IMG/VR virus record: IMGVR_UViG_3300047510_001118
Span: 186,001 to 250,000 of that record
Direction: 5' to 3' (one strand)
Length of the DNA stretch: 64,000 nucleotides
Positions 27,276 through 56,168 of the stretch are shown one piece after another. Numbering within the stretch: the first letter of the stretch is position 1; every line of letters starts with the position of its first letter. The position numbers and the translations under genes were made by a program. The notes beneath the pieces were generated by a model that was given only the letters and a program-made list of their open reading frames with translations, was not told where the DNA came from and did no database searches.

Positions 27276-27291
27276 TTATTTTTCCACAAAA

Positions 27292-27334: not shown

Positions 27335-27349
27335 GTTGGAGTCTAAACC

Positions 27350-29338: not shown

Positions 29339-29353
29339 GCTCGTATATACCGA

Positions 29354-33268: not shown

Positions 33269-33297
33269 ATTATAAACTCAGCACTTAATAAAGTCAA
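33269..33297 (-). promoter_or_regulatory. Near-consensus sigma70 promoter for the gp55-gp47-gp46 operon
   Basis: TTGACT (33297-33292), 17 nt spacer, TATAAT (33274-33269), then GAGGAG RBS. Confidence 0.85.
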
Positions 33298-33303
33298 TAA
33301 ATA
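33275..33303 (+). promoter_or_regulatory. Late promoter with upstream box
   Basis: AACTCAGCA-N14-TAAATA upstream of 33326. Confidence 0.7.
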
Positions 33304-33325
33304 TGTTTAACAAGGATAACCAAAT

Positions 33326-34237
33326 ATGCCAGTCGACTTAAACAATTTTGTAAGTGGTGCTAGATCAATTGCTGGTACTGCCGCTAATACATTAGGAACA
33401 GTAGTAAACTCTGTAAACACCTTAAAGACTCAAGGATTTGGAGCATTTGGCGCAAACATTGCGCAGGCTATCAGAGGAAAAAACCTATTACCCGGAGGAA
33501 TGACAGGTAAATCTTCATCCCCGACTAGCGCAATTTTTTCTTCTAATTCTAGAGACTGGCGAGTACGATTAAACTTTCCTCCTAATTTTGCTTTTATCAC
33601 TAGTCCGTTGCTAAGACCATTAATAGAAACTCAGGGATTAGTGTTCCCATACACACCGCAGATACAGATTACACATTCTGCCAATTACAGTGATATGAGT
33701 CCGGTTCATAATAATTATCCCTTTCTATCTTATGAGAATAGCAAAGTTGATAACATAACTATTAATGCTCCTTTTTATGTTGAAGATTCTCTAGAAGCCG
33801 CATATTGGGTAGCGTGTATGCACTTTTTAAAAGCAGCCACAAAAATGCAGTTTGGTGAAGATTCAAATGCCGGCGCACCTCCTCCTATTTTTAAATTAAA
33901 CGGTTACGGAGATTATGTGTTTAAAGATGTACCAGTGGTAGTTAAATCATTTACAATGGATTTACCTAACGATTCAGATTATATTTCAACAGGCCTTGCC
34001 GCACAAGGCGGTGCTACAGGCAATACTGCGGCAAGAATTGCTTCACAGGTTACCGGAATAAACTTTACTGGCTCTGCAACAGCTCAGGGAGTGTCCTGGG
34101 CACCAGTAAAAAGTACAATTAATATTACAGTAGTGCCATTATACACTAGACAACAGGTTAGAAACTTCAGTCTTGAAAAATTCGTCAGCGGCGATTATGT
34201 TATTGGATCTACTGGAAACAAAACAGGATTTATCTAA
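33326..34237 (+). CDS. Baseplate/tail tube initiator-like protein (gp48/gp54-like)
   Basis: DWRVRL, G.VFPYTP.I...H.ANY, W.A..HFL...TKM.FG, GAPPP...LNGYG.Y.F..VPVVV.SF; first gene of the baseplate cluster. Confidence 0.6.
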   Translation: MPVDLNNFVSGARSIAGTAANTLGTVVNSVNTLKTQGFGAFGANIAQAIRGKNLLPGGMTGKSSSPTSAIFSSNSRDWRVRLNFPPNFAFITSPLLRPLIETQGLVFPYTPQIQITHSANYSDMSPVHNNYPFLSYENSKVDNITINAPFYVEDSLEAAYWVACMHFLKAATKMQFGEDSNAGAPPPIFKLNGYGDYVFKDVPVVVKSFTMDLPNDSDYISTGLAAQGGATGNTAARIASQVTGINFTGSATAQGVSWAPVKSTINITVVPLYTRQQVRNFSLEKFVSGDYVIGSTGNKTGFI

Positions 34238-34539
34238 TGGCGTCAGATTATAAAAATAAAAGTCCGTGGCATACTACTACAATTTTTCCAGGATATCTTG
34301 GAAATTTAAATGTACGATCTGTAAGTGCCGAACCCGACGACTGGGAATACACCATAGAACCACAATATAATTATAGGCCAGATCTGTTGGCATTTGACTT
34401 ATACGGAACTCCTAAACTATGGTGGGTTTTTGTACAACGAAATATGGATGTATTAAAAGATCCTGTATTTGATTTTAAAACCGGAACTAGCATCTACATA
34501 CCAAAGCAGACTAGTTTATTTTCTGTTCTAGGAATTTAA
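34237..34539 (+). CDS. gp53: Baseplate wedge protein gp53-like (LysM-related)
   Basis: Y.YRPDLLA.DLYG...LWWVF...N motif. Confidence 0.75.
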   Translation: MASDYKNKSPWHTTTIFPGYLGNLNVRSVSAEPDDWEYTIEPQYNYRPDLLAFDLYGTPKLWWVFVQRNMDVLKDPVFDFKTGTSIYIPKQTSLFSVLGI

Positions 34540-34540
34540 T

Positions 34541-36832: not shown

Positions 36833-36833
36833 T

Positions 36834-38231: not shown

Positions 38232-38241
38232 ATAATAAACT

Positions 38242-38679: not shown

Positions 38680-38684
38680 AAATT

Positions 38685-38713
38685 AACTGCCCACTTTATG
38701 AATACAATAAATA
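38685..38713 (+). promoter_or_regulatory. Late promoter with upstream box
   Basis: AACTGCCCA-N14-TAAATA upstream of gp6. Confidence 0.75.
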
Positions 38714-38731
38714 TAGTATCGAGGGCAGAAT

Positions 38732-41700
38732 ATGGCAAGTGTAGATAGACAAAATAAATTAATAGCCGCAGAAGATTGGAAAAAAGTATACCAGTCTTTT
38801 AAGAACGCAGACTTTAAATCCTACGACTTTGATAACCTACGTCGTACAATGATCACGTATCTGCGTGAAAATTATCCAGAAGATTTTAACGATTATATTG
38901 AGTCAAGTGAGTACTTGGCCCTTATTGACCTTATTGCTTTCCTAGGTCAAAACCTAGCATTTAGATTTGATTTAAATGCTCGAGATAACTTTTTAGAACT
39001 GTCAGAACGCCGTGAAAGTGTACTGCGTCTAGCACGTCTTTTGTCTTATAACCCTAAACGCAATCAATCAGCAAACGGGCTATTAAAATTTACAGCAATT
39101 TCTACAACAGAATCTGTTGTAGATAGTAACGGTCGAGATATTTCAGGACAAACTATTGTTTGGAACGACAGTGCCAATGCTAACTGGTACGAGCAGTTTA
39201 TTAAAGTAATTAATGCTTCCTTGCCAGAAACAAGTCAGTTTGGGTTACCTCAGGATTCTGCTACTATCAGCGGAGTTCCAACTCAGCAATATAGATTTAA
39301 TGCGTCAAACACAGAAATACCTGTCTACGGTTTTAGCAAAAACATCGATGGCCGAAACATGGACTTTGAAATAGTGTCTACGGTATTTGCCGGCAGCAAT
39401 AAGATCTATGAAGAAGCACCATTTCCAACAAATAGTCTAGCGTTCCTACACCGAGATGATGGCGGCGGTCCAGCCAGTAGCAACACAGGATTTTTTGTAC
39501 ACTTCCGTCAAGGTACACTACAAGAAAGTACATTTGCTATTGATCGTCCAAGCACCAGCGAGACAGTTGATATCAACACACAAGAAATCAATAATTCAGA
39601 TATTTGGTTGTATTCTTTAAATTCAATCGGTTTTGAAAACGAACTATGGACTAAGGTTGATGCTGTAGAAGGCAACAACATCATCTATAATAGCATTAGC
39701 AAAAATATAAGAAACATTTACAGCGTTCTTACACGTTCATTAGACAGAGTAAGGTTAATTTTCTCTGACGGTGTGTTTGGTAATTTACCTCAGGGAAATT
39801 TTAAAGTTTATTATAGAACTAGTAATGGTTTGAGTTACTCAATAAATCCAGCAGATGTACGCAATGTGACTATTGATATTCCTTATATCAGTCGAGTAGG
39901 TAAACGAGAAATTGTAACAATTACTTTAGGATTAAAATATACAGTGGCAAACGCCACAGCCGCTGAAACCACAGACAGCATTAAAACAAATGCTCCGGCT
40001 ACTTATTACACACAGAATCGCATGATCACTGGAGAGGATTATAATGTTTTTCCTCTTAGTGTAAATCAAGAAATTGTTAAAATTAAATCAATTAACCGCA
40101 TTAGTAGTGGTATTAGTAGGTATTTTGATTTAAAAGATGCCTCAGGAAAATACAGTACAACAAATCTATTTGGCACCGACGGTGTGCTTTACAAAGAACA
40201 GACTAATGACTCATTTACTTTTACAGTAGCAACTAGAACCGACATCGAAAGCGTTATTCGTAATCAAGTCGAGCCGTTATTGTCGTCACGTAAGATTAAA
40301 GATTTTTATATTGATAACTTTCCTAGTATTAACCAAGGACCAAACTTCCACTCGTTTTATCAACAGACCAGTGCCGTTAATCTATGTACCGGGTATATTG
40401 GAGATCCATCTAGTGCCGCAATTAAAAAAGTAGGAACTTTCACATCTTCAAATTTAAGATTTATTACGCCTGGCGCAATAGTAAAATTTATTCCTAGAGA
40501 GGGATACCTTTTCACTAAAGATAACGAAGAAGTTTTGATAGCAGATGCCGATAAAGAAGCCAAATCTTATATTTGGACAAAAATAATCAATGTTGTTGGA
40601 GACGGCACAGCCTCTGGTACAGGACTATTGCCCAACGGTCAAGGACCAATTACGTTTAATGACATTGTACCATCAAACGCTGTTATGGATTTAACATACT
40701 CTAAATTTGTAACAGGATTAGAAACTAGTGTTAGAAATAGAGCCATTGATCTTATTTTTGCTAATAAAGAATTTGGCTTTAGATATGATTCGAATTCTTC
40801 TTCGTGGAAAATTATCACAGACGCAAACTTAGATAAGAAGAACGAGTTTAGTCTAGGAAAATCAGGCGACGCAAGTAATCAACAATTAGATGCTAGTTGG
40901 TTAATTCTTTTTGAAACCAACGGGGAAACCTATACTGTAACTGTTAGAGGTACACGATACGTGTTTGAAAGTGAAAAAGAAATACGCTTTTTCTATGACA
41001 GTTCAGATAAAGTATACGATAGTAACACAGGAAAAATTGTTAGAGATAAAGTTGTAGTTTTAGGTATTAATACTAAACCATCAGACATTGCTCCTATTAA
41101 TCAAGATATTGATTGGGAAATAGTCGATGATTATAAAGGCGCCGACGGATATATCGACAGTAAAAAAATATCAATAAGTTTTTATGACAATGACGAAGAC
41201 GGTGTTATAGACAACCCAGAAATTTTTGATATAGTAGTTGCTCCTGATACTGCTCTATTAGTAGACCGATACGTTTTTCAAAAGAGTCGTGTAAGCATTG
41301 ATGGTGTTACAGATTATTATTACATCAAAAACGAAAATGATTTAATTAAAATATTTCAAACACAAAATGCTGTTGATCCTAACACGTTAGTAGATCAACA
41401 ATTAATTTATATTATTGAAGAAAACTTAGTTAAAATTTTTAATAAGTCAAGTATTACATATACAGTAACAACTGATTATAAAGCGTTTATAGGTAGAGAT
41501 GAGTTAAAATTTCAATATATTCATGCCGCAGATGAAAGTTCTAGAATAGATCCGTCGTCTACAAATATTGTTGATGTGTTTATGTTAACTAAGTCATATG
41601 ACACTAATTACCGTAGATGGCTCAACGGTGACATTGCTACAAAACCGTTGCCACTAAGCAGTGATGCTTTGTTTATTAACTTTGGCAGCGACCTTAATAA

Positions 41701-42166
41701 GATTAAAGCAATGAGTGACGAGATCATTTATCACCCAGTAAAATATAAAAATTTATTCGGATCTAAAGCAGATACTAGTCTACAGGCTATCTTTAAAGTT
41801 GTTAAAAATTCCTCAATGGTAGTCAGCGACAACGATATTAAAACCGGAGTAATCAACGCAGTCAACGAATTCTTTTCAATTGAAAACTGGGACTTCGGCG
41901 ATACTTTCTATTTTGGAGAATTAGCCACTTATGTTATGACTAAACTAACTCCTAAAATTGCTAATATTGTTTTAGTTCCAAAAAATCAAAATCTTGCGTT
42001 TGGTAGTTTGTATGAAATTAAATCAAACCCCGACGAAATTTTTGCTAGTTCGGCCACAGTTGAAAGTGTTGAAATCATTTCAGAGATTACTGCGGCAAGA
42101 CTCAATTCAAGTGGCACAGTATTAACAGCAGTGTCTAGTGGCACATCAAGTATTGAAAGTAATTAA
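38732..42166 (+). CDS. gp6: Baseplate wedge protein gp6-like, 1144 aa
   Basis: YDFD.LR..MI.YL....PE.FNDY.ESSE...LID..A, A.RRESVLRLAR..SY.P.R, AP..YYTQNRM.TGEDY. Confidence 0.85.
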   Translation: MASVDRQNKLIAAEDWKKVYQSFKNADFKSYDFDNLRRTMITYLRENYPEDFNDYIESSEYLALIDLIAFLGQNLAFRFDLNARDNFLELSERRESVLRLARLLSYNPKRNQSANGLLKFTAISTTESVVDSNGRDISGQTIVWNDSANANWYEQFIKVINASLPETSQFGLPQDSATISGVPTQQYRFNASNTEIPVYGFSKNIDGRNMDFEIVSTVFAGSNKIYEEAPFPTNSLAFLHRDDGGGPASSNTGFFVHFRQGTLQESTFAIDRPSTSETVDINTQEINNSDIWLYSLNSIGFENELWTKVDAVEGNNIIYNSISKNIRNIYSVLTRSLDRVRLIFSDGVFGNLPQGNFKVYYRTSNGLSYSINPADVRNVTIDIPYISRVGKREIVTITLGLKYTVANATAAETTDSIKTNAPATYYTQNRMITGEDYNVFPLSVNQEIVKIKSINRISSGISRYFDLKDASGKYSTTNLFGTDGVLYKEQTNDSFTFTVATRTDIESVIRNQVEPLLSSRKIKDFYIDNFPSINQGPNFHSFYQQTSAVNLCTGYIGDPSSAAIKKVGTFTSSNLRFITPGAIVKFIPREGYLFTKDNEEVLIADADKEAKSYIWTKIINVVGDGTASGTGLLPNGQGPITFNDIVPSNAVMDLTYSKFVTGLETSVRNRAIDLIFANKEFGFRYDSNSSSWKIITDANLDKKNEFSLGKSGDASNQQLDASWLILFETNGETYTVTVRGTRYVFESEKEIRFFYDSSDKVYDSNTGKIVRDKVVVLGINTKPSDIAPINQDIDWEIVDDYKGADGYIDSKKISISFYDNDEDGVIDNPEIFDIVVAPDTALLVDRYVFQKSRVSIDGVTDYYYIKNENDLIKIFQTQNAVDPNTLVDQQLIYIIEENLVKIFNKSSITYTVTTDYKAFIGRDELKFQYIHAADESSRIDPSSTNIVDVFMLTKSYDTNYRRWLNGDIATKPLPLSSDALFINFGSDLNKIKAMSDEIIYHPVKYKNLFGSKADTSLQAIFKVVKNSSMVVSDNDIKTGVINAVNEFFSIENWDFGDTFYFGELATYVMTKLTPKIANIVLVPKNQNLAFGSLYEIKSNPDEIFASSATVESVEIISEITAARLNSSGTVLTAVSSGTSSIESN

Positions 42167-42176
42167 AGGACAGTAA

Positions 42177-45100
42177 ATGGCATTTACTAAAGATCAAAAA
42201 GAACCAAAACTACCAATAGGTCAAGACAGCACTCGAAGTGCTTCAGATTTTTTACCTAGATATTTTAGAACAAATACTAATCGTAAAATATTAAACGGAA
42301 CACTTGATCAGTTAATATCTGTTGGTAATGTAGATAAAATTAATGCTTACATCGGTAGAAAATCTACCAAGGCGTATACGCCTACTGACAATTACTTAGA
42401 AGAAATATCTTTAGATCGTCAGTCATACCAACTTGAGCCTGCGATCTTAGTCAAAGACAAATTAGATAATGTAACATTTTTTAAAGATTACAACGATTAT
42501 ATTAATCAGTTACTATATTTTAATACTTTTGATATTGACCACGAGCTAACTAATAGCCAAGAATTTTACAGTTGGAATCCGCACATTGATTGGGACAAAT
42601 TTGTAAACTATCGTGAATATTATTGGCTACCAATGGGACCGCAGTCAATCGCAGTTAAAGGTCAGTCTAAAGACATTGTTAGCACATACTCGATTTCTTT
42701 AGTAGAAGATTCTGATAATTTTGCTTATATTTTTACTCCTGACGGACTGACACGTAATCCTACACTAAAACTTTACAGAGGTCAAACATATAATTTTGAC
42801 ATTGACTGTGAAGGACAGCCTTTAACTTTTTCTACTAATCGTTCTCAAGATATTACATTTGTCTATAAGGACGGTGTGACTAAAGATTCTGAATATGTTG
42901 AAAAAGGAACAATTACATTTAAAGTTCCTGACAATGCGCCTGATATTATCTATTATGTTAGTAAAAATAATATCAACACATCAGGATTTTTTAAAATATA
43001 TGACATTGAAGAAAATACAGCCATCGATGTTGAAAAAGAAATATTAGGTAAAAAAACTTACTTAATCGACGGAATAACTCCGCTGTCAAGTGGAATGAAA
43101 ATTAATTTTATTGGTAATGTTACCCCTGAAAAATACAGTACTGGATTTTGGTATGTAGAAGGCGTGGGAAATGCTATTAGATTAGTTGATTCAGTTACTC
43201 TTGAAAATCCTGGAGGATATACATTCAGTGAAGACATTGACTTTGATAGTGAAAAATTTGATACACAAGGATTTGACAGCAACAATAACTATCCTTCTAA
43301 CAAAGATTATATCACTATTAATAGATCAAGCCGAGATAGAAACCCGTGGTCAAGATATAATAGATGGTTCCACAAATCTGTTATCGAAACATCGGCAGCA
43401 TATAATAATCAACCTATAGATCTTGACCAAGAAGCAAGGGCTAAAAGACCTATTGTTGAATTTGATAGAGATATCCAACTTTGGAATTTTGGAGTAGAAG
43501 CAAAAAATTCAATAGACTTAATTGATTTATATACTAAAGATGTTTTTAGCACGGTAGAAGGATCATTTGGATTTAAAGTTGATGGTGTTTCGTTAGTCGA
43601 AGGCATGCGTGTATTGTTTGCCGCAGACACTGATAAAACAGTCAATGGTAGAATTTTTAAAGTAACATTTGTTACGCACCTAGGACAAAAAAGAATTTCT
43701 CTAATTGATGTTGATGATACAAATCCTATCGAAGGAGAAAGTGTATTAGTACTACAGGGAGATTTTTTAAAAGGAAAAACATTCCATTATTCGTCTGGTG
43801 TATGGAATTTAAGTCAAGAAAAGACTGGTCTTAATCAGCCACCGTTATTTGATACTGTTGATGTATCTGGAAATAGTTTTGGAGATCGATCTGTTTATAT
43901 CGGTTCTACTTTCCAAGGAACTAAAATTTTTAGTTATGCTGTAGGAGACGTACTAGATCCAGTGTTAGGCTTTAACATTGATTATCGCAATATTGGCAAC
44001 ATCGGAGATATTGTTTTTGATTTTAATTTACAAAAAGATCAGTTTACCTATCAAGGTGAAGTTGAATTAATTACAAAAAAATTAGATAGAGGTTATCTAA
44101 AGAAAAATATTTCTATTTCAACTTTTAATTTAATAAACGGTTGGGTTAAGGCAGAATTTAATTCTAAGCAACCAGTTATTCGTCAATACGACACAACAAC
44201 TCAAAACAATTTATTTGAAATTGATGTTTATAAAAATAGTGCCACACTAGACGATCTTGAAGTGTCAGTGTTTGTTGATGATATCAAACAGCCTTCTACT
44301 TCCTATGAAGTATATAGACAAAATAGCATAGCCTACATTCAATTTAACAGCGACTTAGACACGAACAGATCTGTAGTATTAGAAACACGGTCAGCGGCAA
44401 AGAAATTAAAAGATGTTGGTTATTATAAGTTTCCAAGCAATCTTGAAAGTAATCCTCAAAATTTAAGTCTTGACGATTTAACACTGGGAGAAATCACAAA
44501 TCATTTAAAAACTATTGTTGATAATTCTCCAAGTTTTTCAGGACAAATGCCAGGAATTAGTAATCTACGAGATATCGGAGATCAAACTGGATACGGTAGT
44601 CAAATAATTCAACACTCTGCTCCGTTGGCACCAATTATCTATTCTTTTACTAACAAAAATGTTAATATAATTAAGTCTCTAAGATATGCCAATGATGAAT
44701 ACTCAAAGTTTAAAAGAAACTTTATTAGAACTGCTACAACATTAGGATATGATGGGGAAACTCGAGATCATGTTGATTTAATTTTTAAAGAATTAAGAAA
44801 AAATTCTACTACATCATCACCATTCTATCTCAGCGACATGGTACCGTTTGGTGTAAACTTTATCTACGAACAAGAAATCATCGACGATAGTTTTACTGAT
44901 TATCCGTTGACATTTGATTTTAATTTAGAAACATTAAGTCGTAAATCAGTTTTAGTTTACTTAAACGACACATTATTATTATATGGTAGAGATTACATCT
45001 TTACAAATGACAGTTTTGTTAGATTGTTAGCCCCAATCACTACAGGTGACAATTTAAAGGTAGCACAATATGAAAACAGCCTTGGCTGCTGTGTTCCACC

Positions 45101-48100
45101 GACGCCTACTAAGTTAGGATTATATCCAAAATTTGAACCTAAAATTTTTATTGATAACACATATCAAACACCAACGTTGGTAATTCAAGGGCACGATGGC
45201 AGTATCACAGTAGCCTTTAATGATTATAGAGATAATCTAATATTAGAATTAGAATATAGAATTTATAATAATATTAAGAAAGAATATGATCCTTCATTGT
45301 TTGACATTAATAATTTCATTGAAGGCCACCATAGAAAAACTAACCTTTCAACTAATGAATTAAATCTTGCTTTAAGACAAGAATTTTTAACTTGGTTAGG
45401 TTTAACTAATAAAGATTATACAAAGCACGATTTCTTTGATAGAAATAATCCTTATACATTTAATTACAAGTCTTATTCAAGCTCTGACGGAACGCCATTA
45501 ATTGGATTCTGGAGAGGAATATACAAATATTTCTATGACACTGACAGACCGCACACACACCCATGGGAGATGTTAGGTTTTTCAAATAAGCCAACTTGGT
45601 GGGACAGTGTATATGGAATTGCGCCTTATACTAAAGATAATTTAATTTTATGGAATGATCTAAGAGATGGAATAATTAGAGAGCCTGGCATACTACCAAA
45701 ACAAAATAAAAAATACGTTAGGGAAGATTTATTAACTTATATTCCTGTTGATGCTGAAGGCAATCTTTTAAATCCTTTAGAAATTGGATTAGTAAGAAAT
45801 TATGTAGCAACGTCTGCTGAAAAAGAATTTACGTTCGGCGACTGGGCGCCTGTTGAAACTGCTTGGAGACGCGGCAGTCAATATCCGTTTGCTTTAATTA
45901 CAGCCTTAACACTGTTAAGACCTGCTCAAATGTTTGCTGTTTGCTTTGATAGAGAGCGTCAATATAGAGACGGAACAGGGCAAATTGTATATAAAATGCC
46001 AGCAGGAAATCTAAGATTTAATACAACTAATTTAGTCTTTCCTAATACAGTAAAAGAATCTGAAAATAGATTTACCAGTGGACTAATCAACTATATGTGC
46101 GATTATGCTATAAGTAAATCTTTTGGATTTTTAGAAGAGTTTAAAACTGAGTTATCAAGTTTACAAATAAAAATTTCTAGCAAGTTGGCAGGATTTACTA
46201 GCAAAGAAAAATTTAAACTTATTCTCGACAGCCGTAGTCCTTTAAATCAAGGAAATGTTTTTATACCGCAAGAGAATTATAATATAATTCTTAATACTAG
46301 CAGTCCTATTTTATCAATATCTTATAGTGGTGTAATTATTGAAAAAACATCTAGCGGTTTTGTAATCAATGGATATAATAAATCAAATCCTGACTTTAGA
46401 TATTTTAAACCATTAGATACAGTTTCAGACCCAACAGTTAATGTGGGCGGTATTTCAGAAACATATCTCGAGTGGACTTCGGGTAAAACATACACTAAAG
46501 GCCAAGTTGTAAGAGTTGATCAAAACTTTTATAGAGTAACGGCTTCTCATGATGGCGGCCCTTCTTTTGAATTAAAATATTTTGCTAAACTACCAGCACT
46601 ACCAATCGTGGGCGGCAGAGAAGTTATTATTAGAAGAAACTTTACCACAGAAGTTTCAACAATACACTACGGGGCCGAATTAAAAACAACACAAGAAGTG
46701 GTTGATTTTGTATTAGGTTACGGTAAATGGTTAGAAAGCCAAGGATTTATTTTTGACAGTTTTAATCCTGTAATTAAAACAGTTACAGACTGGCAAACTA
46801 GTGCCAAAGAGTTTGCCTTCTGGACAACTCAAAATTGGAGTACTGGATCTGTAATTACCCTAAGCCCAGCAGCCGAAGAAGTAACATTTGGAAAATTATA
46901 TGCGGTTGCTGACAGCATCTACGATCCGTTCTATGAATATACAGTGTTCAAACAAGACGGTCAAACATTAGATCCAAATTTTACAAATACTGTAAGAGAG
47001 AATAATTCTTTTAGTATCCGTCCTAAAGATACTGGAGATGGTGTTTATCACATTACATTAAATTTAATTCAAAAAGAACATGTGCTAATATTAGATGATG
47101 TTACGGTGTTTAATGATGTAATATACGATCAAACACAGGGATATAGACAGGATAGGATTAAAGTTGTAGGCTATAAAATATCAGACTGGAACGGCGATTT
47201 TGTTATTCCTGGATTTGTGTATGACAGAGCAGTATTAACTGAATGGAAACCTTGGAGAGATTATGCTCTAGGAGAAACTGTAAAATACAAAGAATTTTAT
47301 TACAGTGCTAGAAAAAATATTCCAGGAACTGAGCTATTCAACGACGACGAGTGGTACAGATTAAACGGTAAACCAGAAAGTAAATTAATTCCTAACTGGG
47401 ACTATCGTGCTACACAGTTTGAAGATTTTTATGATCTAGATACAGATAGTTTCGATGTTGATCAACAAAAGTTTGCTCAACATTTAATTGGTTATCAAAA
47501 GAGACAATATCTTGAAAACATTATCAATGATGATGTAAGCCAGTATAAGTTTTATCAGGGCATGATTCAAGAAAAAGGAACAAAGAATAGCCTTTCAAAA
47601 TTATTTGACGTATTAAGTTCTACAGATGCCGACAGCCTTGAATTTTATGAAGAGTGGGCAATTAGATTAGGTCAGTACGGAGCCAGCGAAGGATTTGAAG
47701 AAGTTGAGTATCTATTAGACGAGTCTCAATTTTTAATAAATCCACAGCCTATTGAATTAGTTGATTCAGTACCTCCGGGCGTGAATGATTTTGTCTACAG
47801 AATTACTAGAGATAAAGTTTATCTAAAACCAGACACATACGATCACAAACCTATTCCTACAGTTAGGTCTAAGAAAGAATATATTCCTACTGCTGGCTAT
47901 GTACATTTAGAAGATATAAAATATATTATAACTTCTAAAGATCAAATTGGTGACTATAATATCAATGATCTAAAAGAGGGCGATTATTTTTGGTTAGGAT
48001 TTGATAAAACATCTTGGAATGTTTACAGATTTACTCTAGTTGTTTCTTCAGTAAGATCCTTCCAAGAATTATCTAATCTAAGAATTAATTTTAATTCAGC

Positions 48101-51100
48101 AAGTAGTTTATTTTCTGTAAATGATTTTATCGGAATTAACAATACAAATTCATCTGTTGAAGGAATAAAACAAGTTTTAGCAGTCGGCCCAGGATATATT
48201 GAAATTGAACTTCCTCAAGATCTTGATACTGAAGCCATTGCGGCACTTAATAACAATCTACAAGTAAACTTATTTGCTTTTACGTCGCAGAGATTAGCAA
48301 CTACAAGTTCTAAAATTTCAACAATAGACGACTTAAATGATTTACCTGTTCCTAGAAAAAAGAACGGAGAACTTGTTTGGATTGACGGTGCTAATAATGA
48401 CTGGAGTGTGTGGAAGTTTGACAAGTCATATTCTCGATCAGTGATATCTAACACTGCTGATTATTTTGGTAGAACATTAGCAGTAAGCGAAGACGATTCT
48501 ATTTTTGCTGTTAGCAGTCTAACAACTCTAGTTGATAGCAATGGGGATCCTAGAGTAGACGATAACGGAGATATATTAAAGTCTGATGTCTTATCTTTTT
48601 ATACAAGATCTACTGAAAAGTTTTCATGGCTCCTAAAGGGAGAAATATCAAAATTAACAACAATTATTCAGAACGAAAGTTTTCAAAATACAAACTATAG
48701 TTTTGGAGAATCGTTAGCCCTTAGCGCCGCCGGCGACTATCTATTAGTTGGAGCACCAGCATACGGAATAGTTGAGATTCCTCAACCACCGTTGCCACCG
48801 ATTGAAATAGTTAAAAATTGGGGTTATGTTGCCAAGTATAATAAAAACAGATTTAATAATTTTGAATTTGACAGAGTTATTTTAAGTCCAGTACAAACAG
48901 ATAATGAGTTCTTTGGTCATAAGATAGCAATATCTGGTAACGTTGCGTTTATTGCCGGTAAAGGCAGTGACACGGCGCCTGCGTCTTTGACAGCATACAA
49001 TCTAGCATCTAATACAACGACCGTAAGAATTACTTTCTCTAATGTAGAAATTATTGATTTAACAACAGGTTCTGATAATACTGTGGTAATTTCTAAATCA
49101 GACTCAACTGTAGCAGTATACAAACTAGTAGGAAATTCTTTAACATTAATACAAAATATATCATCAAGTGTTGTTCCAGGTACGCTAATTGACGACAAGT
49201 TTGGCCAATCTGTATCAATTTCTAAAGATAATTCTATGATTGCTGTGGGAATTCCATACTACAGTGAAGTGAATTCTAATCAGGGCACAGTGGCAATTTT
49301 AATTAAATCTGGTTCAACTTATCAGTACAGTTATCGTGTCAACAGCCCATTAAAACAAGAATCGGAAAGATTTGGTTACAGAGTTAGATTTAATCCTACT
49401 GGAAATAGATTGGTAGTTTACAGTTACGGTGGCGACCAAACCATTGACACAACGATTGATCAAGGTACAACTACGTTTGACCTAGACGCAATGAAATTTG
49501 TAGAGCGCAGTGAAAATGTTGGAAGTGTGCGTGTCTATGAAAAATACGGAAACAAGTTTATATTCGATGACGAACTTGAGCCTCAAGAAGTCATAGGAAT
49601 TAATTACGGCGACAATTTAGTAGTGGGTAGAAACAACATATATGTCAATGACTACACAGCCGTAGAAGGACGTTTCTATGAATTTGTAGGACGATCAACT
49701 TCGTGGACAAAATATAGAAGTCCAGATCCTATTGTTGACCTAACAAAGATAAAATCTATCTTCTTATACGATACTGTTAAAAATAATATTATTCAAAATT
49801 TAGATTTCATCGATCCAATCAACGGAAAAGTTTTAGGTGTTGCTGAACAAGAACTAAGTTTTAAAACTTATTACGATCCGGCTGTATATTCAACAGGTAC
49901 TGATGCTGTAGTTGTCGATAGTTTAATGCCATGGAAACAACAGCAAGTTGGAAAGTTATGGTGGGATTTAAGTACAATTAAATTTGTTAATCCTAATCAA
50001 GGTAGTGTTGTCTATAAAGCAAATACATGGAATAATGTATTTGCTGAAGCAGAGGTTGATATCTACGAATGGGTTGAGTCAGAATATTCACCAGAAGAGT
50101 GGGATAGTCTAGCAGACACTGAAGCCGGCCTTACACTAGGAATCAGCGGAGTATCAAAATATGGTGCTCAGGTATACAGCGTTAGTCAAACTTATGACAA
50201 CGTAAGCAAAACATTTAAAAACATTTATTATTTCTGGGTTAAAAATAAATCAATAGTTCCTGATGTAACCTTCCGTAAAGTTTCAGCCAGAGAAGTCTCA
50301 GAATTAATTTCTAATCCTAAATCTAAAGGCATTAGATATGTTACTTTATTAGGAAATAATCAATTAGCGTTAGTTAACTGTAAAGAATTAATCACTGACA
50401 AAGATGTTGCTTTAAATATTCGCTATTGGATTATTGACAAAACAGATCAAAATATACACAGTCATTATCAATTATTAGCCGAAGGCAACGTTGACAAAAA
50501 ACTTAACAAGTATGTTGAACAAAAATGGTTTGATAGTTTAATTGGATATGATAACCAGGGTAGAGAAATTCCTGATCCAAGTTTGCCACCGAAGTTAAAA
50601 TATGGTATTTTAAGCAAACCTAGACAGTCAATGTTTGTTAATAGATTAGAGGCATTAAAACAGGTTATCGAAAGAGTTAATTCTGTATTAGTAAACAATT
50701 TATTAATTGATGATTTTGATTTTGATATTTTAAATTCTAAAGAAGAACCTCCGTCAGAATTTTCAAGAGAATATGACATAGCAATTGACACTCAAAGTCA
50801 AATTAGATTTGTTGGATCTACCGGCTTTGACCAAGCCACTGCTAGTTTAGTAATCAAAGAAGGCAAAATTGAACGAGTAATAGTAACTAGTGCGGGTAGA
50901 GGATACAAGATTCCTCCTTCTGTAAAAGTTATTTCTAATACCGGCTCAGGAGCAAGATTATCAACAGTTATCAACTCTTCAGGAGAGGTTACTGCTATTA
51001 ATATTGACAATGCTGGTAGAAATTATCAAACATCGACCTTTGTAGAAATTAGACCGTTTACTGTATTAGTTACTACTGACGAAACTGCGGCTAGTAAGTG

Positions 51101-54100
51101 GTCACTGTACACCTGGAACTCAGCAATCGCTAACTGGACCAGAAGTCGTACACAAATTTATGATGTAACAAAACATTGGAACTATATTGACTGGTATGCC
51201 ACCGGATTCTCATCTTATACTAAAATAAATCATCAAATCGATTTAGCATACGAAATGAGCTTTATTGATATTGCCATTGGCGATATAGTTAAGATTAACA
51301 ATGAAAAAACAGGTGGCTGGATATTATTACAAAAAATTAATAATCTTGATACCGATAACGTATCCTTAAATTATAAAACAGTAGGCCGTCAAAACGGAAC
51401 TATACAATTTAACTCAAATCTTTATAAGTTTAAGAACAGTAACATAGGTTACGATAGTACAAGTTATGACAGAGATGTCTATGACGACGAGCCTAAAGAA
51501 GAATTAAGATTTATTTTAAGTTGTATAAAAAATAATTTACTAATTGATAATTTAGAAATTGAATATAACAAATTATTCTTTTCAAGTTTGAGATACGTGT
51601 TTACTGAACAAGGTTTTGTTGATTGGGCATTTAAGACTAGTTTTATCAAAGCCAAACATAATTTGGGAGAGCTTAAACAGAAGGTTACTTTTAAGAGCGA
51701 CAATCTAGAAAGTTATGAAGATTATATTAATGAAGTTAAACCATACAGAACTAAGATTAGAGAATTTATCAGTAATTATACAGCCTATGATCAAACTAAT
51801 TCTGCTGTAACTGATTTTGATTTACCTCCAAGGTATGTAACAGCCGAAGGTCAAATTTTACCTTTTACTGTTAAAGTTAAAAATTCTCAGATTGAATATA
51901 TAGAATCAGACATTCTAAAAGAGCCGTATCAAGATTGGTTGTCTTCTGTTGGTTACCAAGTAGTTGAGATTAGAGTAATTGACGGCGGCACAGGATATCA
52001 AGGGCCTCCTCAAGTAGAAATAGTCGGTGACGCCGAAACAACAGCAACAGCAAAAGCCTATGTTTCTCAGGGAGCAGTTTCTAAAGTAATAGTTGAAACG
52101 CCAGGTCAAGGATATGTAACTATCCCAACAATACGTTTTAATGGATCAGTTGGTGCTACAGGTAGACCTGCTAAGGCCATTGTAGTATTAGGAAACTCTT
52201 TAGTAAGAACAAATAATCTTGGAATTAAATTTGATAGAATTTCACCTGAGTTTACAGTATCGTCTATTACAGTAACGCAGGCATTTGACGGTACAGGATC
52301 AAGAACTAGATTTGAATTACGCTGGCCAGTTGATTTATCTGTTGAAAAAACCACAGTGTTCATAGATACTGAAGAACTACTATCTAATGACTTTGAAGTT
52401 TCAAACGAACTAGATACTACCTCAAAGTATACTAGATATAAAGGAATTTTAACCTTAACCAAAGCCGCGCCTATAACAACTACAGTTACTATCAATTATG
52501 CCAAAGACATAAGATTATTAGACGCCGCTGATAGAATTCAATATTATTATGAACCTGGAATTGGCCAATTAGGAAAAGATCTTGGTCAATTAATGGAAGG
52601 TGTTGATTATGGCGGTGTTGAAGTTACCGGGTTAGACTTTGACCTTGGTGCTGGCTGGGATGGCTTGCCTTGGTTTACATCTGGATGGGACGACTTTGAT
52701 GTAAACTATACTGATCATTTAGTGGTAACTGACGGTGTACAAAGAACATTCGAATTACCATACACACCCGCAGACGGTGAAGCACTTAACATTTATCTAA
52801 ACAGTGTTAGAATCGACGATCCAAATTACGATGTATATACTCTAGCAGAAGACAATTACAATAGTTTAGTTGCTGAACTTGTGATACTTCAACAAGAAGA
52901 AGAAGTATTACAGCAGGCATATGACCAAGCAGTAATTGATTATGATAATATTATAGCCGAACAAGTTGCTCGTCAGGAACAGTATGATAACCTTACAGCA
53001 GATTATGCTCCTGATTCAGGTGCTGAACCCGATCCCGATCGTCCTTGGGCAGTGCCTGGCGGTACAGATCCAATTAATATACCGCTTGAAAATCTATTAA
53101 CAGAGATTCTCGCAGACATTGCGGATCTACAGGCCCAGGCAATCGCTGCAGCAACTGTTAGAAATAATGCTCTAGATGATTTAACTGACAAACAACAAGA
53201 AGTAGCAGATAAAGAAGATGAAGTAAGCGATGCTCTTGACACACTTAATGCCGCTCCGGAAATTACAAATCCAACAGCGTCAATGAATACATTCTACGGT
53301 GACGGCATAACCAATGAAGTGGTTATTCCAAATAATGTTGTTATCGCTGATAAAGATCAGTTTATCTTCCGTAAGATTACCAGTGACGGTAGTTTTAAAC
53401 CAAACGAAAAGTTTTACGATTCTGAAATTATTGGCGGACTTCCAAATTCAACAACAGGCGGCATGAGTTACGAAACTGCCAAAGGAATCCTAGCAGAAGA
53501 AATTATTATCGATGGCGATAATTTTGTAACTACGACATCAAGTCATGCTCCAGAAGAAGTAGTTACTGGGCAGGTGCTAGATTCTGTTTCAATAACAGTC
53601 TATGACACAGTTAGCGACGGTTCTCCGGTGATTTTAAATAGACATTATATTGCCGATGGTGTTCAAACTGAATTTGCTATTGGACAAAAACCAAATACGA
53701 CTCAAGCCGCATTGGTTAAAATAAATGGTTTTGTTAAAAAACAAGATGTTGATTATACTTTTGATTATATAAATCAAAAAATTATTTTTGATACAGCGCC
53801 TCAAAAACTTGATGAAGTTGTTATTACATCAATGAGTAGAAACGGTCTAAATGTATTAGATGCTGATTCTTTTGTTGGCGACGGTATTACTAAAGAATTT
53901 ATTACAGTTGCTCGTTGGGAGGAAGACAAGTATTCTGTATTAGTGACAATTAACGGCGAAGCAGAAACAGTAACAACATTTATTACAGATTCGTCTTACA
54001 GTGAAGTTGGTAATATAGGAATTATTTTTGATACAGCACCAGTAGCCGGAGCAATCATTGATTACACTGTATTAAGTTCAACAGTTAATACTATCAGTTA

Positions 54101-56123
54101 TATGAAAACTGAAACAGTAATACATGACGGAACGGCTGATTCTTATGTATTAACTCAAATACCTTCTAACTTGAAACCTTTTGAGAATAATGTAATAGTT
54201 GAAGTTGCCGGCGAAGTTCTTCGTCCATCAGACGCAGTGTACTTTGACGTTCAGGGAACTAATAGAACCTACATAGTTGATGTAGGAGATTATGCTTTAA
54301 ATTCTATCGATACTTCACAAGTTGAAGTTTATAGAAATGGAGTAAAACTTTCAGTGTCAATTCAGTATACGTGGACTTCAACTAAAAATGAATTAAAGAT
54401 TAAACGTGGTATTGCTAATCCGGGTGATAAGATTGTATTAGTAATAGTTGATCAAGGTCAATACTATATCGAACCCGACGGCACCGATTTAAAACTAAGA
54501 CTAGTTGGCACTTATACAGCAGGTGATAAAATTTCTGTAACAACTTTTTCAAATCATGATATTCTTGAAATTGAAAGAAATAATACTTACATTAGATCTG
54601 CCTCAGAACTAATAAGAGGAACACCAGAATATTACACAATTAACGAGGTTATCAATGGAAGATTTAAATTAAGATATCCTATTAGTTCTGCTTCTTATGT
54701 GTGGGTAACATTTAATGGTAAGTTATTAACATCTGAATTAGATTATATTCTTGAAGATAATAACGAATACATCCAAATAGATAAAAATCGAAACCTATTA
54801 GAAACTGATTTAGTTGAAATTATCGTATTCAATGATGAGTATACTAAACGTCCTTTTGGTTACAGAATTTTTAAAGATATGCTTAACAGAACATTCTATA
54901 AGAGAATTGACGATACTATATCTACAAAATTAGCAACACCTTTAAATTATTTTGATACAGAAATAGAAGTAGAAGATGCCAGCGGACTCTTAGAACCAAA
55001 TAGAGATCAAAACGAAGCAGGCATCATTTATATTAATGCGGAACGTATTGAGTATCTTGAAAAAGATGGCAACACTTTAAGATATCTTCGTAGAGGTACA
55101 TTAGGTACAGGAACTCCAGCAAGTCATCCAATAGGATCATTTGTAAGAGACCAAGGTAAAAATCAAACTATTCCTTACAAAGACGAAACTGAAACTGTGG
55201 TATTAGTAGCCGATGGTTACCTAAGTGCGCTAACTGATTTTGAAAATTCTTCAACAGTAACAGTTACTGATATTAGATACGCAAGCCCAGTAAACAATAA
55301 TACTGCGTTTCCGTTAGGCGGACAAACTGTTACAGTTAAAGGTACAGGATTTAAATCTAACGTTAAGGCCTATGTTGGTAATACCGAATGTCCTACAACT
55401 TATATTAGTCCAACAGAATTAACATTCGTAAACCCACAAAAAACAGTTGGAGCATATGATCTTGTTATTACAAATCCTTCAATAATCATTGACGGCAATC
55501 TAATTCCTTCTACAAGCAGAGTAGTGCCTGGCGCAATTAAGTATCTACAGATACTTCTACCTTTTAGTCCTGCGCCAAACCCAAGTACGGAAACAGGATG
55601 GTATAAGAATACTGAAATATTAAATGTCTCAAAAATACAGATTGGTCGATATTACACTATTTCAGAATCTGGAACAACAGACTTTATTGCGATGGGTGCT
55701 GGCTCTAATAATCCGGGACATAGTTTCTTGGCTACTGCTACTGGTACAGGAACTGGAACAGTAATTAATTATTCTAGTATTCCGTATGAGTATTGGGAAG
55801 GACAAGACATTGAAATGTTCATTGGCGGTAAGAGATTACGTAAGAGTCCGTTGAGCATTTGGGACGAATCGTTAGGCCCAGACAGTCCTAGCGGTGACAA
55901 AACATTAGAAGCAGAGTTTGCAGTAAACAAAAACATAGGACCCTATGTAAGGTTAACTACACCTCCTCCTAAAGGATCTAAGATTATAGTACAGAAGAAA
56001 CTTGGACAAATGTGGACAGCACCGGGAGTACAATTATCAGATAGTCAAACCGATCAGGCTAAGTTTATTAGGGCCGGTGTTGTCTATCTACCAGGAAAAA
56101 CCCAAATAAATAATGGGAATTAA
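42177..56123 (+). CDS. Giant baseplate wedge/structural protein, 4648 aa (gp7-like position)
   Basis: Single uninterrupted ORF after gp6; FG-GAP-like propeller repeats (about 48460-49700), YI.EVKPY.TKIREF, ..GDG....F repeats, IPT/TIG domain (about 55310-55480), RG.LGT motif. Confidence 0.85.
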   Translation: MAFTKDQKEPKLPIGQDSTRSASDFLPRYFRTNTNRKILNGTLDQLISVGNVDKINAYIGRKSTKAYTPTDNYLEEISLDRQSYQLEPAILVKDKLDNVTFFKDYNDYINQLLYFNTFDIDHELTNSQEFYSWNPHIDWDKFVNYREYYWLPMGPQSIAVKGQSKDIVSTYSISLVEDSDNFAYIFTPDGLTRNPTLKLYRGQTYNFDIDCEGQPLTFSTNRSQDITFVYKDGVTKDSEYVEKGTITFKVPDNAPDIIYYVSKNNINTSGFFKIYDIEENTAIDVEKEILGKKTYLIDGITPLSSGMKINFIGNVTPEKYSTGFWYVEGVGNAIRLVDSVTLENPGGYTFSEDIDFDSEKFDTQGFDSNNNYPSNKDYITINRSSRDRNPWSRYNRWFHKSVIETSAAYNNQPIDLDQEARAKRPIVEFDRDIQLWNFGVEAKNSIDLIDLYTKDVFSTVEGSFGFKVDGVSLVEGMRVLFAADTDKTVNGRIFKVTFVTHLGQKRISLIDVDDTNPIEGESVLVLQGDFLKGKTFHYSSGVWNLSQEKTGLNQPPLFDTVDVSGNSFGDRSVYIGSTFQGTKIFSYAVGDVLDPVLGFNIDYRNIGNIGDIVFDFNLQKDQFTYQGEVELITKKLDRGYLKKNISISTFNLINGWVKAEFNSKQPVIRQYDTTTQNNLFEIDVYKNSATLDDLEVSVFVDDIKQPSTSYEVYRQNSIAYIQFNSDLDTNRSVVLETRSAAKKLKDVGYYKFPSNLESNPQNLSLDDLTLGEITNHLKTIVDNSPSFSGQMPGISNLRDIGDQTGYGSQIIQHSAPLAPIIYSFTNKNVNIIKSLRYANDEYSKFKRNFIRTATTLGYDGETRDHVDLIFKELRKNSTTSSPFYLSDMVPFGVNFIYEQEIIDDSFTDYPLTFDFNLETLSRKSVLVYLNDTLLLYGRDYIFTNDSFVRLLAPITTGDNLKVAQYENSLGCCVPPTPTKLGLYPKFEPKIFIDNTYQTPTLVIQGHDGSITVAFNDYRDNLILELEYRIYNNIKKEYDPSLFDINNFIEGHHRKTNLSTNELNLALRQEFLTWLGLTNKDYTKHDFFDRNNPYTFNYKSYSSSDGTPLIGFWRGIYKYFYDTDRPHTHPWEMLGFSNKPTWWDSVYGIAPYTKDNLILWNDLRDGIIREPGILPKQNKKYVREDLLTYIPVDAEGNLLNPLEIGLVRNYVATSAEKEFTFGDWAPVETAWRRGSQYPFALITALTLLRPAQMFAVCFDRERQYRDGTGQIVYKMPAGNLRFNTTNLVFPNTVKESENRFTSGLINYMCDYAISKSFGFLEEFKTELSSLQIKISSKLAGFTSKEKFKLILDSRSPLNQGNVFIPQENYNIILNTSSPILSISYSGVIIEKTSSGFVINGYNKSNPDFRYFKPLDTVSDPTVNVGGISETYLEWTSGKTYTKGQVVRVDQNFYRVTASHDGGPSFELKYFAKLPALPIVGGREVIIRRNFTTEVSTIHYGAELKTTQEVVDFVLGYGKWLESQGFIFDSFNPVIKTVTDWQTSAKEFAFWTTQNWSTGSVITLSPAAEEVTFGKLYAVADSIYDPFYEYTVFKQDGQTLDPNFTNTVRENNSFSIRPKDTGDGVYHITLNLIQKEHVLILDDVTVFNDVIYDQTQGYRQDRIKVVGYKISDWNGDFVIPGFVYDRAVLTEWKPWRDYALGETVKYKEFYYSARKNIPGTELFNDDEWYRLNGKPESKLIPNWDYRATQFEDFYDLDTDSFDVDQQKFAQHLIGYQKRQYLENIINDDVSQYKFYQGMIQEKGTKNSLSKLFDVLSSTDADSLEFYEEWAIRLGQYGASEGFEEVEYLLDESQFLINPQPIELVDSVPPGVNDFVYRITRDKVYLKPDTYDHKPIPTVRSKKEYIPTAGYVHLEDIKYIITSKDQIGDYNINDLKEGDYFWLGFDKTSWNVYRFTLVVSSVRSFQELSNLRINFNSASSLFSVNDFIGINNTNSSVEGIKQVLAVGPGYIEIELPQDLDTEAIAALNNNLQVNLFAFTSQRLATTSSKISTIDDLNDLPVPRKKNGELVWIDGANNDWSVWKFDKSYSRSVISNTADYFGRTLAVSEDDSIFAVSSLTTLVDSNGDPRVDDNGDILKSDVLSFYTRSTEKFSWLLKGEISKLTTIIQNESFQNTNYSFGESLALSAAGDYLLVGAPAYGIVEIPQPPLPPIEIVKNWGYVAKYNKNRFNNFEFDRVILSPVQTDNEFFGHKIAISGNVAFIAGKGSDTAPASLTAYNLASNTTTVRITFSNVEIIDLTTGSDNTVVISKSDSTVAVYKLVGNSLTLIQNISSSVVPGTLIDDKFGQSVSISKDNSMIAVGIPYYSEVNSNQGTVAILIKSGSTYQYSYRVNSPLKQESERFGYRVRFNPTGNRLVVYSYGGDQTIDTTIDQGTTTFDLDAMKFVERSENVGSVRVYEKYGNKFIFDDELEPQEVIGINYGDNLVVGRNNIYVNDYTAVEGRFYEFVGRSTSWTKYRSPDPIVDLTKIKSIFLYDTVKNNIIQNLDFIDPINGKVLGVAEQELSFKTYYDPAVYSTGTDAVVVDSLMPWKQQQVGKLWWDLSTIKFVNPNQGSVVYKANTWNNVFAEAEVDIYEWVESEYSPEEWDSLADTEAGLTLGISGVSKYGAQVYSVSQTYDNVSKTFKNIYYFWVKNKSIVPDVTFRKVSAREVSELISNPKSKGIRYVTLLGNNQLALVNCKELITDKDVALNIRYWIIDKTDQNIHSHYQLLAEGNVDKKLNKYVEQKWFDSLIGYDNQGREIPDPSLPPKLKYGILSKPRQSMFVNRLEALKQVIERVNSVLVNNLLIDDFDFDILNSKEEPPSEFSREYDIAIDTQSQIRFVGSTGFDQATASLVIKEGKIERVIVTSAGRGYKIPPSVKVISNTGSGARLSTVINSSGEVTAINIDNAGRNYQTSTFVEIRPFTVLVTTDETAASKWSLYTWNSAIANWTRSRTQIYDVTKHWNYIDWYATGFSSYTKINHQIDLAYEMSFIDIAIGDIVKINNEKTGGWILLQKINNLDTDNVSLNYKTVGRQNGTIQFNSNLYKFKNSNIGYDSTSYDRDVYDDEPKEELRFILSCIKNNLLIDNLEIEYNKLFFSSLRYVFTEQGFVDWAFKTSFIKAKHNLGELKQKVTFKSDNLESYEDYINEVKPYRTKIREFISNYTAYDQTNSAVTDFDLPPRYVTAEGQILPFTVKVKNSQIEYIESDILKEPYQDWLSSVGYQVVEIRVIDGGTGYQGPPQVEIVGDAETTATAKAYVSQGAVSKVIVETPGQGYVTIPTIRFNGSVGATGRPAKAIVVLGNSLVRTNNLGIKFDRISPEFTVSSITVTQAFDGTGSRTRFELRWPVDLSVEKTTVFIDTEELLSNDFEVSNELDTTSKYTRYKGILTLTKAAPITTTVTINYAKDIRLLDAADRIQYYYEPGIGQLGKDLGQLMEGVDYGGVEVTGLDFDLGAGWDGLPWFTSGWDDFDVNYTDHLVVTDGVQRTFELPYTPADGEALNIYLNSVRIDDPNYDVYTLAEDNYNSLVAELVILQQEEEVLQQAYDQAVIDYDNIIAEQVARQEQYDNLTADYAPDSGAEPDPDRPWAVPGGTDPINIPLENLLTEILADIADLQAQAIAAATVRNNALDDLTDKQQEVADKEDEVSDALDTLNAAPEITNPTASMNTFYGDGITNEVVIPNNVVIADKDQFIFRKITSDGSFKPNEKFYDSEIIGGLPNSTTGGMSYETAKGILAEEIIIDGDNFVTTTSSHAPEEVVTGQVLDSVSITVYDTVSDGSPVILNRHYIADGVQTEFAIGQKPNTTQAALVKINGFVKKQDVDYTFDYINQKIIFDTAPQKLDEVVITSMSRNGLNVLDADSFVGDGITKEFITVARWEEDKYSVLVTINGEAETVTTFITDSSYSEVGNIGIIFDTAPVAGAIIDYTVLSSTVNTISYMKTETVIHDGTADSYVLTQIPSNLKPFENNVIVEVAGEVLRPSDAVYFDVQGTNRTYIVDVGDYALNSIDTSQVEVYRNGVKLSVSIQYTWTSTKNELKIKRGIANPGDKIVLVIVDQGQYYIEPDGTDLKLRLVGTYTAGDKISVTTFSNHDILEIERNNTYIRSASELIRGTPEYYTINEVINGRFKLRYPISSASYVWVTFNGKLLTSELDYILEDNNEYIQIDKNRNLLETDLVEIIVFNDEYTKRPFGYRIFKDMLNRTFYKRIDDTISTKLATPLNYFDTEIEVEDASGLLEPNRDQNEAGIIYINAERIEYLEKDGNTLRYLRRGTLGTGTPASHPIGSFVRDQGKNQTIPYKDETETVVLVADGYLSALTDFENSSTVTVTDIRYASPVNNNTAFPLGGQTVTVKGTGFKSNVKAYVGNTECPTTYISPTELTFVNPQKTVGAYDLVITNPSIIIDGNLIPSTSRVVPGAIKYLQILLPFSPAPNPSTETGWYKNTEILNVSKIQIGRYYTISESGTTDFIAMGAGSNNPGHSFLATATGTGTGTVINYSSIPYEYWEGQDIEMFIGGKRLRKSPLSIWDESLGPDSPSGDKTLEAEFAVNKNIGPYVRLTTPPPKGSKIIVQKKLGQMWTAPGVQLSDSQTDQAKFIRAGVVYLPGKTQINNGN

Positions 56124-56139
56124 CTAGGTTTAAAGAAAT

Positions 56140-56168
56140 AACTGCGCAGATTAAATTAACGGTAAATA
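56140..56168 (+). promoter_or_regulatory. Late promoter with upstream box
   Basis: AACTGCGCA-N14-TAAATA. Confidence 0.75.

Follow-up and report, generated by a model that had tools for sequence, protein, structure and literature searches.

The late promoters of bacteriophage T4 are the textbook case of a minimal promoter: a single 8-bp element, TATAAATA, with no conserved upstream sequence. The gp55 sigma factor reads only this -10-like element; gp33 sits on the beta-flap, where sigma region 4 would be, and touches the backbone of the upstream duplex, while the gp45 sliding clamp, which provides activation, encircles the DNA next to it (PMC2988020; PMC7892883). Other phage promoters do use upstream sites. 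At T4 middle promoters a MotA box at -30 replaces the -35 element in front of a sigma70 -10, through sigma appropriation by AsiA and MotA. At the late promoters of phages Mu (Mor, C) and P2/P4 (Ogr, Delta), small activators bind dyad-symmetric sites at a fixed position upstream of, or overlapping, the -35 region of promoters that lack a -35 element, and so switch on structural-gene operons. Here we describe a conserved, palindrome-like 12-bp site at a fixed distance upstream of the T4-type late-promoter core in a large group of uncultured freshwater jumbo phages, found in front of baseplate, tube-initiator and tail-fiber operons. Its position suggests a dedicated regulator acting on a promoter type thought to need no upstream sequence.

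The window analyzed is a 64,000-nt stretch, bases 186001-250000 of a single 278,126-bp virus record with 39% G+C that is estimated to be about 75% complete. The phage is an uncultured freshwater/lake phage; twenty DNA runs from 10 studies hold it or close strains, and no RNA run does. Its genes place it in the jumbo myovirus assemblage that includes PA5oct, Atu_ph07 and the Rak2-like phages, at only 30-45% protein identity to any cultured member, and a megablast search of 12 kb against cultured phages found no match. The plus-strand block 33326-63160 encodes baseplate wedge, hub/lysozyme, gp25-like and gp6-like proteins, a 4648-aa protein and fiber-like proteins. Immediately to its left, on the other strand, lies a gp55-family late sigma gene, followed by SbcD/SbcC-like genes; further left are a baseplate-hub gene, portal, protease and head genes. 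There are two giant ORFs, one of 4648 aa at 42177-56123 (+), which corresponds in position to the virion protein gp355 of PA5oct, and one of at least 2594 aa at 3-7784 (-), which runs off the window. In a 1.4-kb stretch without long ORFs between the hub gene and the SbcC-like gene (28208-29576), positions 28748-28892 (-) match the Rfam Polynucleobacter-1 RNA (RF01718) at 105 bits (E=3e-23), directly 3′ of a homing-endonuclease-like ORF (28892-29338). This may be a structured RNA associated with the mobile endonuclease, and it hints at a Polynucleobacter-type freshwater host.

A preliminary description of the window reported three plus-strand intergenic sites of the form AACTNNNCA-N14-TAAATA, and this observation is confirmed. 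The boxes and cores are AACTCAGCA at 33275-33283 with TAAATA at 33298-33303, AACTGCCCA at 38685-38693 with TAAATA at 38708-38713, and AACTGCGCA at 56140-56148 with TAAATA at 56163-56168. As shown below, the conserved block extends three bases beyond these 9-nt boxes. The features of the window that bear on it are the following (no strand is assigned to the dyad elements).

33275-33286: site 1 dyad element AACTCAGCACTT, the 9-nt box plus 3 nt; matrix score 12.8 bits
33298-33303, plus strand: TAAATA late-promoter core of site 1, 22 nt before the ATG of ORF 33326-34237, the first gene of the baseplate block, whose PHROG hits are to virion structural, wedge, hub/lysozyme and gp25-like proteins
33269-33297, minus strand: sigma70-type promoter for the gp55 gene, TTGACT (33297-33292), 17-nt spacer, TATAAT (33274-33269); the dyad element fills the 12 spacer bases next to the -10
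32420-33244, minus strand: gp55-family late sigma factor, 274 aa, with an insertion of about 125 aa relative to T4 gp55
38685-38696: site 2 dyad element AACTGCCCACTT; 15.4 bits
38708-38713, plus strand: TAAATA core of site 2, 18 nt before the ATG of the gp6-like wedge gene 38732-42166, which is followed by the 4648-aa ORF
56140-56151: site 3 dyad element AACTGCGCAGAT, with 5 of 6 symmetric pairs; 14.6/17.3 bits
56163-56168, plus strand: TAAATA core of site 3, 21 nt before the ATG of ORF 56190-56798 (202 aa), followed by fiber-like genes
27292-27303: site 5 dyad element AACTGCGCATAT, whose last 3 bases are the start of TATAAATA (27301-27308), which precedes the baseplate-hub gene 27350-28207; 11.4/14.5 bits
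27329-27334, minus strand: opposite-strand TAAATA in the same gap, next to the SD of the hub gene; the likely late promoter of the 786-aa structural gene 24915-27275

Two features of the T4-type late promoter system, a gp55-family late sigma and a TATAAATA-like core upstream of late genes, are present here. The late sigma matches PHROG 12791 at 5e-79 and PHROG 234 at 2e-24, and a phmmer search aligned gp55 of PDB 7d7c (E=6e-6) to its residues 3-19 and 161-236. TAAATA, mostly preceded by A, is a credible core: of 156 copies in the record, 57 lie in the roughly 9% of the genome that is intergenic, about a 4-fold enrichment, and 46 lie within 60 nt upstream of a start codon, typically 17-30 nt, including those before the head and structural operons. 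Gene calls outside the window are crude calls of our own.

Enrichment of the box at a fixed spacing had been named beforehand as a test, and in the whole record, with 231 boxes overall, the composite occurs three times at N14 and 0-1 times at any other spacing from 0 to 39, without a halo of near-matches. We nevertheless asked whether a chance resemblance among AT-rich promoter regions had been picked out post hoc. A shuffle test that allows for this freedom (6 identical columns in any 9-nt window at a fixed register) gave p=0.0018 for the three sites, 0.0023 for the four promoters of the plus-strand block, and 0.017 among eight window promoters; among all 51 candidate promoters of the genome, some triple shares such a box by chance in about 98% of shuffles. 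The window alone is therefore only suggestive, and it is conservation in relatives that shows the element to be more than chance. Given the evidence that follows, a chance origin is effectively refuted and we regard it as most improbable.

The box is kept at the orthologous promoters in dozens of relatives whose proteins are 34-90% identical, with a spacing of 14-15 nt, while spacers and flanks diverge. Because these sequences are phylogenetically related, their counts overstate independence. At site 2, which follows the gp25-like gene, 26 IMG/VR loci at 54-83% protein identity keep a box such as ATCTACCCACTT, AACTACGCACTT or AAGTGCGCACTT 14-15 nt before TAAATA; in 14 distinct sequences, including three distant ones, the box carries 1.52 bits per column, against 0.90 for the spacer and about 0.2 for the distal flank. 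At site 1, loci around the highly conserved gp55 gene gave 55 distinct upstream regions, of which 53 could be placed in register. These show a near-invariant layout, ATTATA, the box, WATWWWGTCAA(n), TAAATA, with the element kept as AACT/ATxT..GCA(C/G)(T/A)T 14-15 nt before the core. The 202-aa gene after site 3 has more than 596 relatives at 77-94% identity in IMG/VR and is far better conserved than its neighbors; it matches only PHROG 11259 (unknown function) and no Pfam family, and the gene at the same position in PA5oct (gp357) is a virion protein by mass spectrometry. Relatives with a non-coding gap upstream of this gene carry the element at 15 nt (eight loci), whereas the majority, whose promoter lies inside an upstream coding sequence, do not. 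In DNA contigs from four runs in four studies, three of which gave long strain contigs of about 97-98% identity, no well-supported variant among those considered, which were not the full set, falls in the boxes; this is weak evidence.

With the orthologue-informed consensus, a fourth full site appeared outside the window at genome positions 139039-139050 on the minus strand, ATCTACGCACTT-N12-TAAATA. It follows a terminator-like hairpin and precedes a gene for a 463-aa tail-tube-like protein (tube-initiator type) next to the tail tube gene, and it is conserved in a 270-kb relative, G001. The site-4 gene (genome 137624-139026, minus strand) starts 5 nt after TAAATA with no Shine-Dalgarno in this genome and in G001, suggesting a leaderless mRNA that starts at the A of ATG; more distant relatives (G007 and G008) have a 30-nt leader instead. 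As a blind test we searched five more distant large contigs, one of them 100% complete, with the strict pattern AWNTNNNYASWT-N11/12-TAAATA. This gave 10 hits against 1 for the reversed control, and nine of the ten lie directly upstream of orthologues of the site-1 gene (three), the gp6-like gene (four) and the tube-like gene (two), at 34-65% protein identity.

Compiling 31 distinct boxes showed that the element is not the asymmetric 9-nt box first described but a 12-bp dyad-symmetric site with the consensus A-W-S-T-R-C|G-Y-A-S-W-T, which is its own reverse complement. The family-weighted matrix correlates with its own reverse complement at r=0.72 (column-permutation p=0.0003), and the pairs A1/T12 and T4/A9 are kept in all 31 boxes. 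The matrix was partly built with a register rule that fixes five positions, but T12, W11 and S10 emerged without being imposed. AACTACGTAGTT, AAGTGCGCACTT and ATATACGTATAT are natural perfect palindromes. Several instances, including site 1, are only 3/6 symmetric, so a monomeric reader is not excluded.

When the whole genome was scanned with this matrix, the three best positions were sites 4, 3 and 2, and of the strand-wise matches scoring at least 14 bits, 5 of 9 are intergenic, against 9% intergenic DNA in the genome. Scores of the 156 TAAATA sites at the 11/12-nt register are bimodal: 19.2, 17.3, 15.4 and 12.8 bits for the four sites, 8.8 for one other, and 3.4 or below for the rest. Other registers reach at most 7.1 bits, apart from one 10.8. 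The 8.8-bit site lies before NrdA (genome 52987) and is probably chance, as it precedes a replication-type gene unlikely to be late. Head, portal and other late promoters lack the element, as do the TAAATA sites at 12883, 16211, 19041 and 61161, for which its absence had been correctly stated; the roughly 45 other TAAATA promoters of the genome conform to the T4 rule of no conserved upstream sequence. Of three further copies proposed in the preliminary description, that at 27320-27312 scores 0.7/3.3 bits and that at 22930-22922, which lies before a terminator-like hairpin, scores 7.2/3.9 bits; neither is supported. The third, at 27292-27300, is real and very widely conserved, but it lies 2 nt, not 14, from TAAATA.

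This fifth site lies in the divergent gap 27276-27349, before a hub gene that matches Pfam T4_baseplate. The left half and center of the element, the TATAAATA that it overlaps and the opposing TAAATA (27334-27329; TATTTA on the plus strand) are conserved in most of 80 loci down to 46% protein identity, as TTAA[CG]TGCG[CT]ATA-TAAATA. The same word therefore occurs in a second, equally rigid register at another baseplate gene. The two late-type promoters face each other about 20 nt apart, so each lies in the other's 5′ leader. A divergent gap outside the window (genome 22060-22125) reads ATCTACTCA-GA-TAAATA-CTTT-TGAGCA and resembles this arrangement (AACTGCGCA-TA-TAAATA-ATT-TGAGCA); its opposite strand carries a TTGACA-N17-TATAAT promoter, and a related word occurs in G001 and in a second relative, G002.

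Site 1 appears to have two functions written on it. On the minus strand the TTGACT-N17-TATAAT arrangement upstream of the gp55 gene is conserved as TTGAC[AT], 17-18 nt, TATAAT, and this promoter is inferred from sequence alone. Sigma70 spacers are not normally sequence-constrained, so the element is selected in its own right. One could argue that it is primarily an operator of this early promoter, or serves another DNA-level process, its presence elsewhere being secondary or unrelated to late transcription; the strict conservation of the sigma70 promoter, within a highly constrained 45-bp region, is consistent with that view. However, sites 2, 3 and 4 have no promoter or gene on the other strand yet keep the element and its spacing to TAAATA, and in PA5oct the gp55 sigma70 promoter lies elsewhere while the box stays 14 nt from TAAATA, so the box is not a by-product of that promoter. 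We consider this explanation very unlikely. Apart from the opposite-strand gp55 promoter at site 1, inspection of the box as a sigma70 or ECF-type -35 showed poor hexamer matches and wrong spacing.

An RNA-level signal in read-through transcripts, such as a processing site, an attenuator or an arm that sequesters the ribosome-binding site so that only late transcripts are translated, as at T4 gene e, seems still less likely. At site 2 the box (CTGCCC) is complementary to GGGCAG in the SD region downstream of TAAATA, and in one site-3 relative the box is the 3′ arm of an 11-bp inverted repeat. The complementarity is not kept in orthologues of site 2 and is absent at sites 1, 3 and 4, no compensatory changes between box and downstream sequence were seen across relatives, and the 12-mers with flanks do not fold (MFE 0.0 kcal/mol at every site).

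PA5oct shares the synteny, and all three equivalent promoters, which lie before gp347, gp353 and gp356, fit the loose 9-mer pattern at N14, with AACTCCGTAGTT as the site-3 equivalent. By matrix score, sites 3 and 2 rank first and third among 182 TAAATA sites in the 78 kb examined, while site 1 is weak; the per-site match rate of 5.5% gives about 2e-4 for three of three. The loose pattern by itself is not specific genome-wide in this AT-rich phage (17 hits against 21 control hits), and the site-4 equivalent is ambiguous, with no TAAATA at the right distance. In the Rak2-like PBECO4 only GCAGTT-N11-TAAATA survives at site 1, and terminator hairpins occupy the other positions. In Atu_ph07 a degenerate AAATTAGTAGTT-N11-TAAATA remains next to gp55. 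The element, vestigial in these last two, is thus sharpest in the uncultured aquatic clade and fades in the cultured lineages.

What the analysis shows directly is the anatomy: the element ends 11-12 nt upstream of TAAATA at four operon promoters (the first baseplate block, the gp6-like wedge plus giant protein, the 202-aa protein plus fibers, and the tube-like protein after the tail tube), overlaps TATAAATA at the hub gene, and lies in the spacer of the sigma70 promoter at site 1. Binding, regulation and every other functional statement made here are inferred from conservation and anatomy. By T4 geometry the 12-mer would span roughly -35 to -23, centered about 29 bp upstream of the inferred start. 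The dyad symmetry, the strict 14-15 nt spacing in four unrelated promoter contexts and the restriction to baseplate and fiber operons fit a stereospecific partner of the polymerase complex, and we suggest, with moderate confidence, that a sequence-specific protein, most simply a homodimer, binds the element and makes a fixed-geometry contact with the gp55-type polymerase complex. This would set the level or timing of baseplate and tail-fiber expression apart from the other late genes. The rigid spacing favors an activator-like contact at the four promoters, whereas the overlapping register at the hub promoter and the position in the gp55 promoter look repressive; anything bound at site 1 should block host-sigma transcription of the late sigma gene, and occupancy would throttle its early transcription.

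We have thus far failed to identify such a protein. Searches for HTH_3 (XRE-type), RHH_1 and MotA_activ domains found no credible candidate in this genome or in three relatives, one of them complete; the single RHH_1 hit (13.7 bits) lies inside a 786-aa structural ORF and was dismissed. The PA5oct annotation, mostly hypothetical proteins, named no regulator. A host factor or an unrecognized fold remains possible. The preliminary interpretation is partly supported. It had proposed either a second, roughly -30 determinant for a baseplate subclass of late promoters or a dedicated regulator site, and a conserved, fixed-distance determinant around -30 does mark a baseplate/tail-fiber subclass in a genome that encodes a gp55-family sigma. 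The spacing is 14 or 15 nt rather than exactly 14, however, and the symmetry favors the second alternative, a regulator site for a dimeric protein, over a sigma-read bipartite promoter.

In a true bipartite promoter, the element would be read by the polymerase complex itself, for instance by a gp33-like co-activator on the beta-flap or by the insertion in this lineage's gp55, and would act like a -35 element for a strong subclass of late promoters. The rigid spacing at four promoters across wide divergence and the lack of a separate regulator in our searches are consistent with this, as is the observation that T4 gp33 contacts upstream duplex DNA in about this zone (PMC7892883). The insertion, which T4 lacks, lies between the equivalents of T4 gp55 residues ~23 and ~38; it is basic, almost invariant across relatives and confidently folded in the AlphaFold model (pLDDT 70-90). 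Against this possibility, a Foldseek search of the insertion against PDB found nothing with E <= 0.001 and hence no recognizable DNA-binding fold, T4 gp33 touches only the DNA backbone, only 4-5 of about 50 TAAATA promoters have the element, the hub promoter uses a different register, and dyad symmetry with natural perfect palindromes is not expected for a single asymmetric reader. We consider it unlikely, though the strongest of the alternatives.

A bolder reading, which we offer only tentatively, is that gp55-type late transcription in this lineage is not a single class: a sequence-specific factor bound at about -29 would define a separate baseplate/tail-fiber regulon while feeding back on the sigma70 promoter of the late sigma gene. 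A Pfam gp45-slide_C domain was not found in this genome or in three relatives (one of them 100% complete), nor DNA_PPF in this genome, in searches whose controls contained no T4-like phage and whose sensitivity for this lineage is uncertain; the clamp may be too diverged to detect, or may be replaced. In this view such a factor could partly replace clamp-dependent activation, a sequence-addressed activation mode for gp55 polymerases.

Neither the T4 late-transcription review, the TAC-gp45 structure paper, the PA5oct omics paper, which reports only sigma70-type motifs, nor full-text searches describe an upstream element at gp55-type promoters, and a comparative study notes that jumbo phages encode many uncharacterized transcription factors (PMC7824862). 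Activator or operator sites at phage late promoters are themselves familiar; what is new is such a site in a system where none was expected. A conserved, position-locked, dyad-symmetric element limited to baseplate and fiber operons would mean that relatives of T4 subdivide late transcription with a sequence-specific regulator, perhaps to set the stoichiometry or timing of baseplate parts against head and sheath parts, and the same site would link that control to expression of the late sigma factor itself. The 12-mer is a concrete bait for an unknown phage transcription factor, and PA5oct, which carries recognizable copies, offers a testable prediction in a cultured relative. More generally, regulatory signals can be recovered from uncultured jumbo phages by phylogenetic footprinting alone.

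In comparison with known systems, the AWST-N4-ASWT arrangement recalls the operators of small dimeric HTH proteins, such as the C-boxes (GACT-N3-AGTC) of restriction-modification controller proteins, in being a short 4-N4-4 type dyad with conserved outer tetramers and a variable center; the half-site sequence differs, and no XRE-type HTH gene was detected in the genomes searched. T4 DsbA (GapR-like), a protein conserved with gene 33 and with reported orthologues in sigma-bearing jumbo phages, is reported to bind late promoters (PMC2988020; PMC7824862), but it binds A/T-rich DNA with low affinity and little specificity, while the element described here has a G+C-rich core and sharp sequence specificity. 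The Mu and P2/P4 systems share a dyad-symmetric site at a fixed position ahead of structural-gene operons, but they use the host sigma70 holoenzyme and their sites are centered further upstream, at about -43 to -55, whereas the presumed partner here is a gp55-type polymerase. The geometry of T4 middle promoters, with an activator box centered near -30 and 11-13 bp from the -10 element, is nearly the same as that found here. Only the spacing resembles it, however: the MotA box is asymmetric with a TGCTT core, the -10 here is TAAATA rather than a sigma70 hexamer, and no MotA activation domain is encoded in the available genome. The T4 late promoters share the gp55-family sigma and the TAAATA core ahead of many structural genes, and differ in that here a conserved 12-bp element lies at about -29 in a subclass of them.
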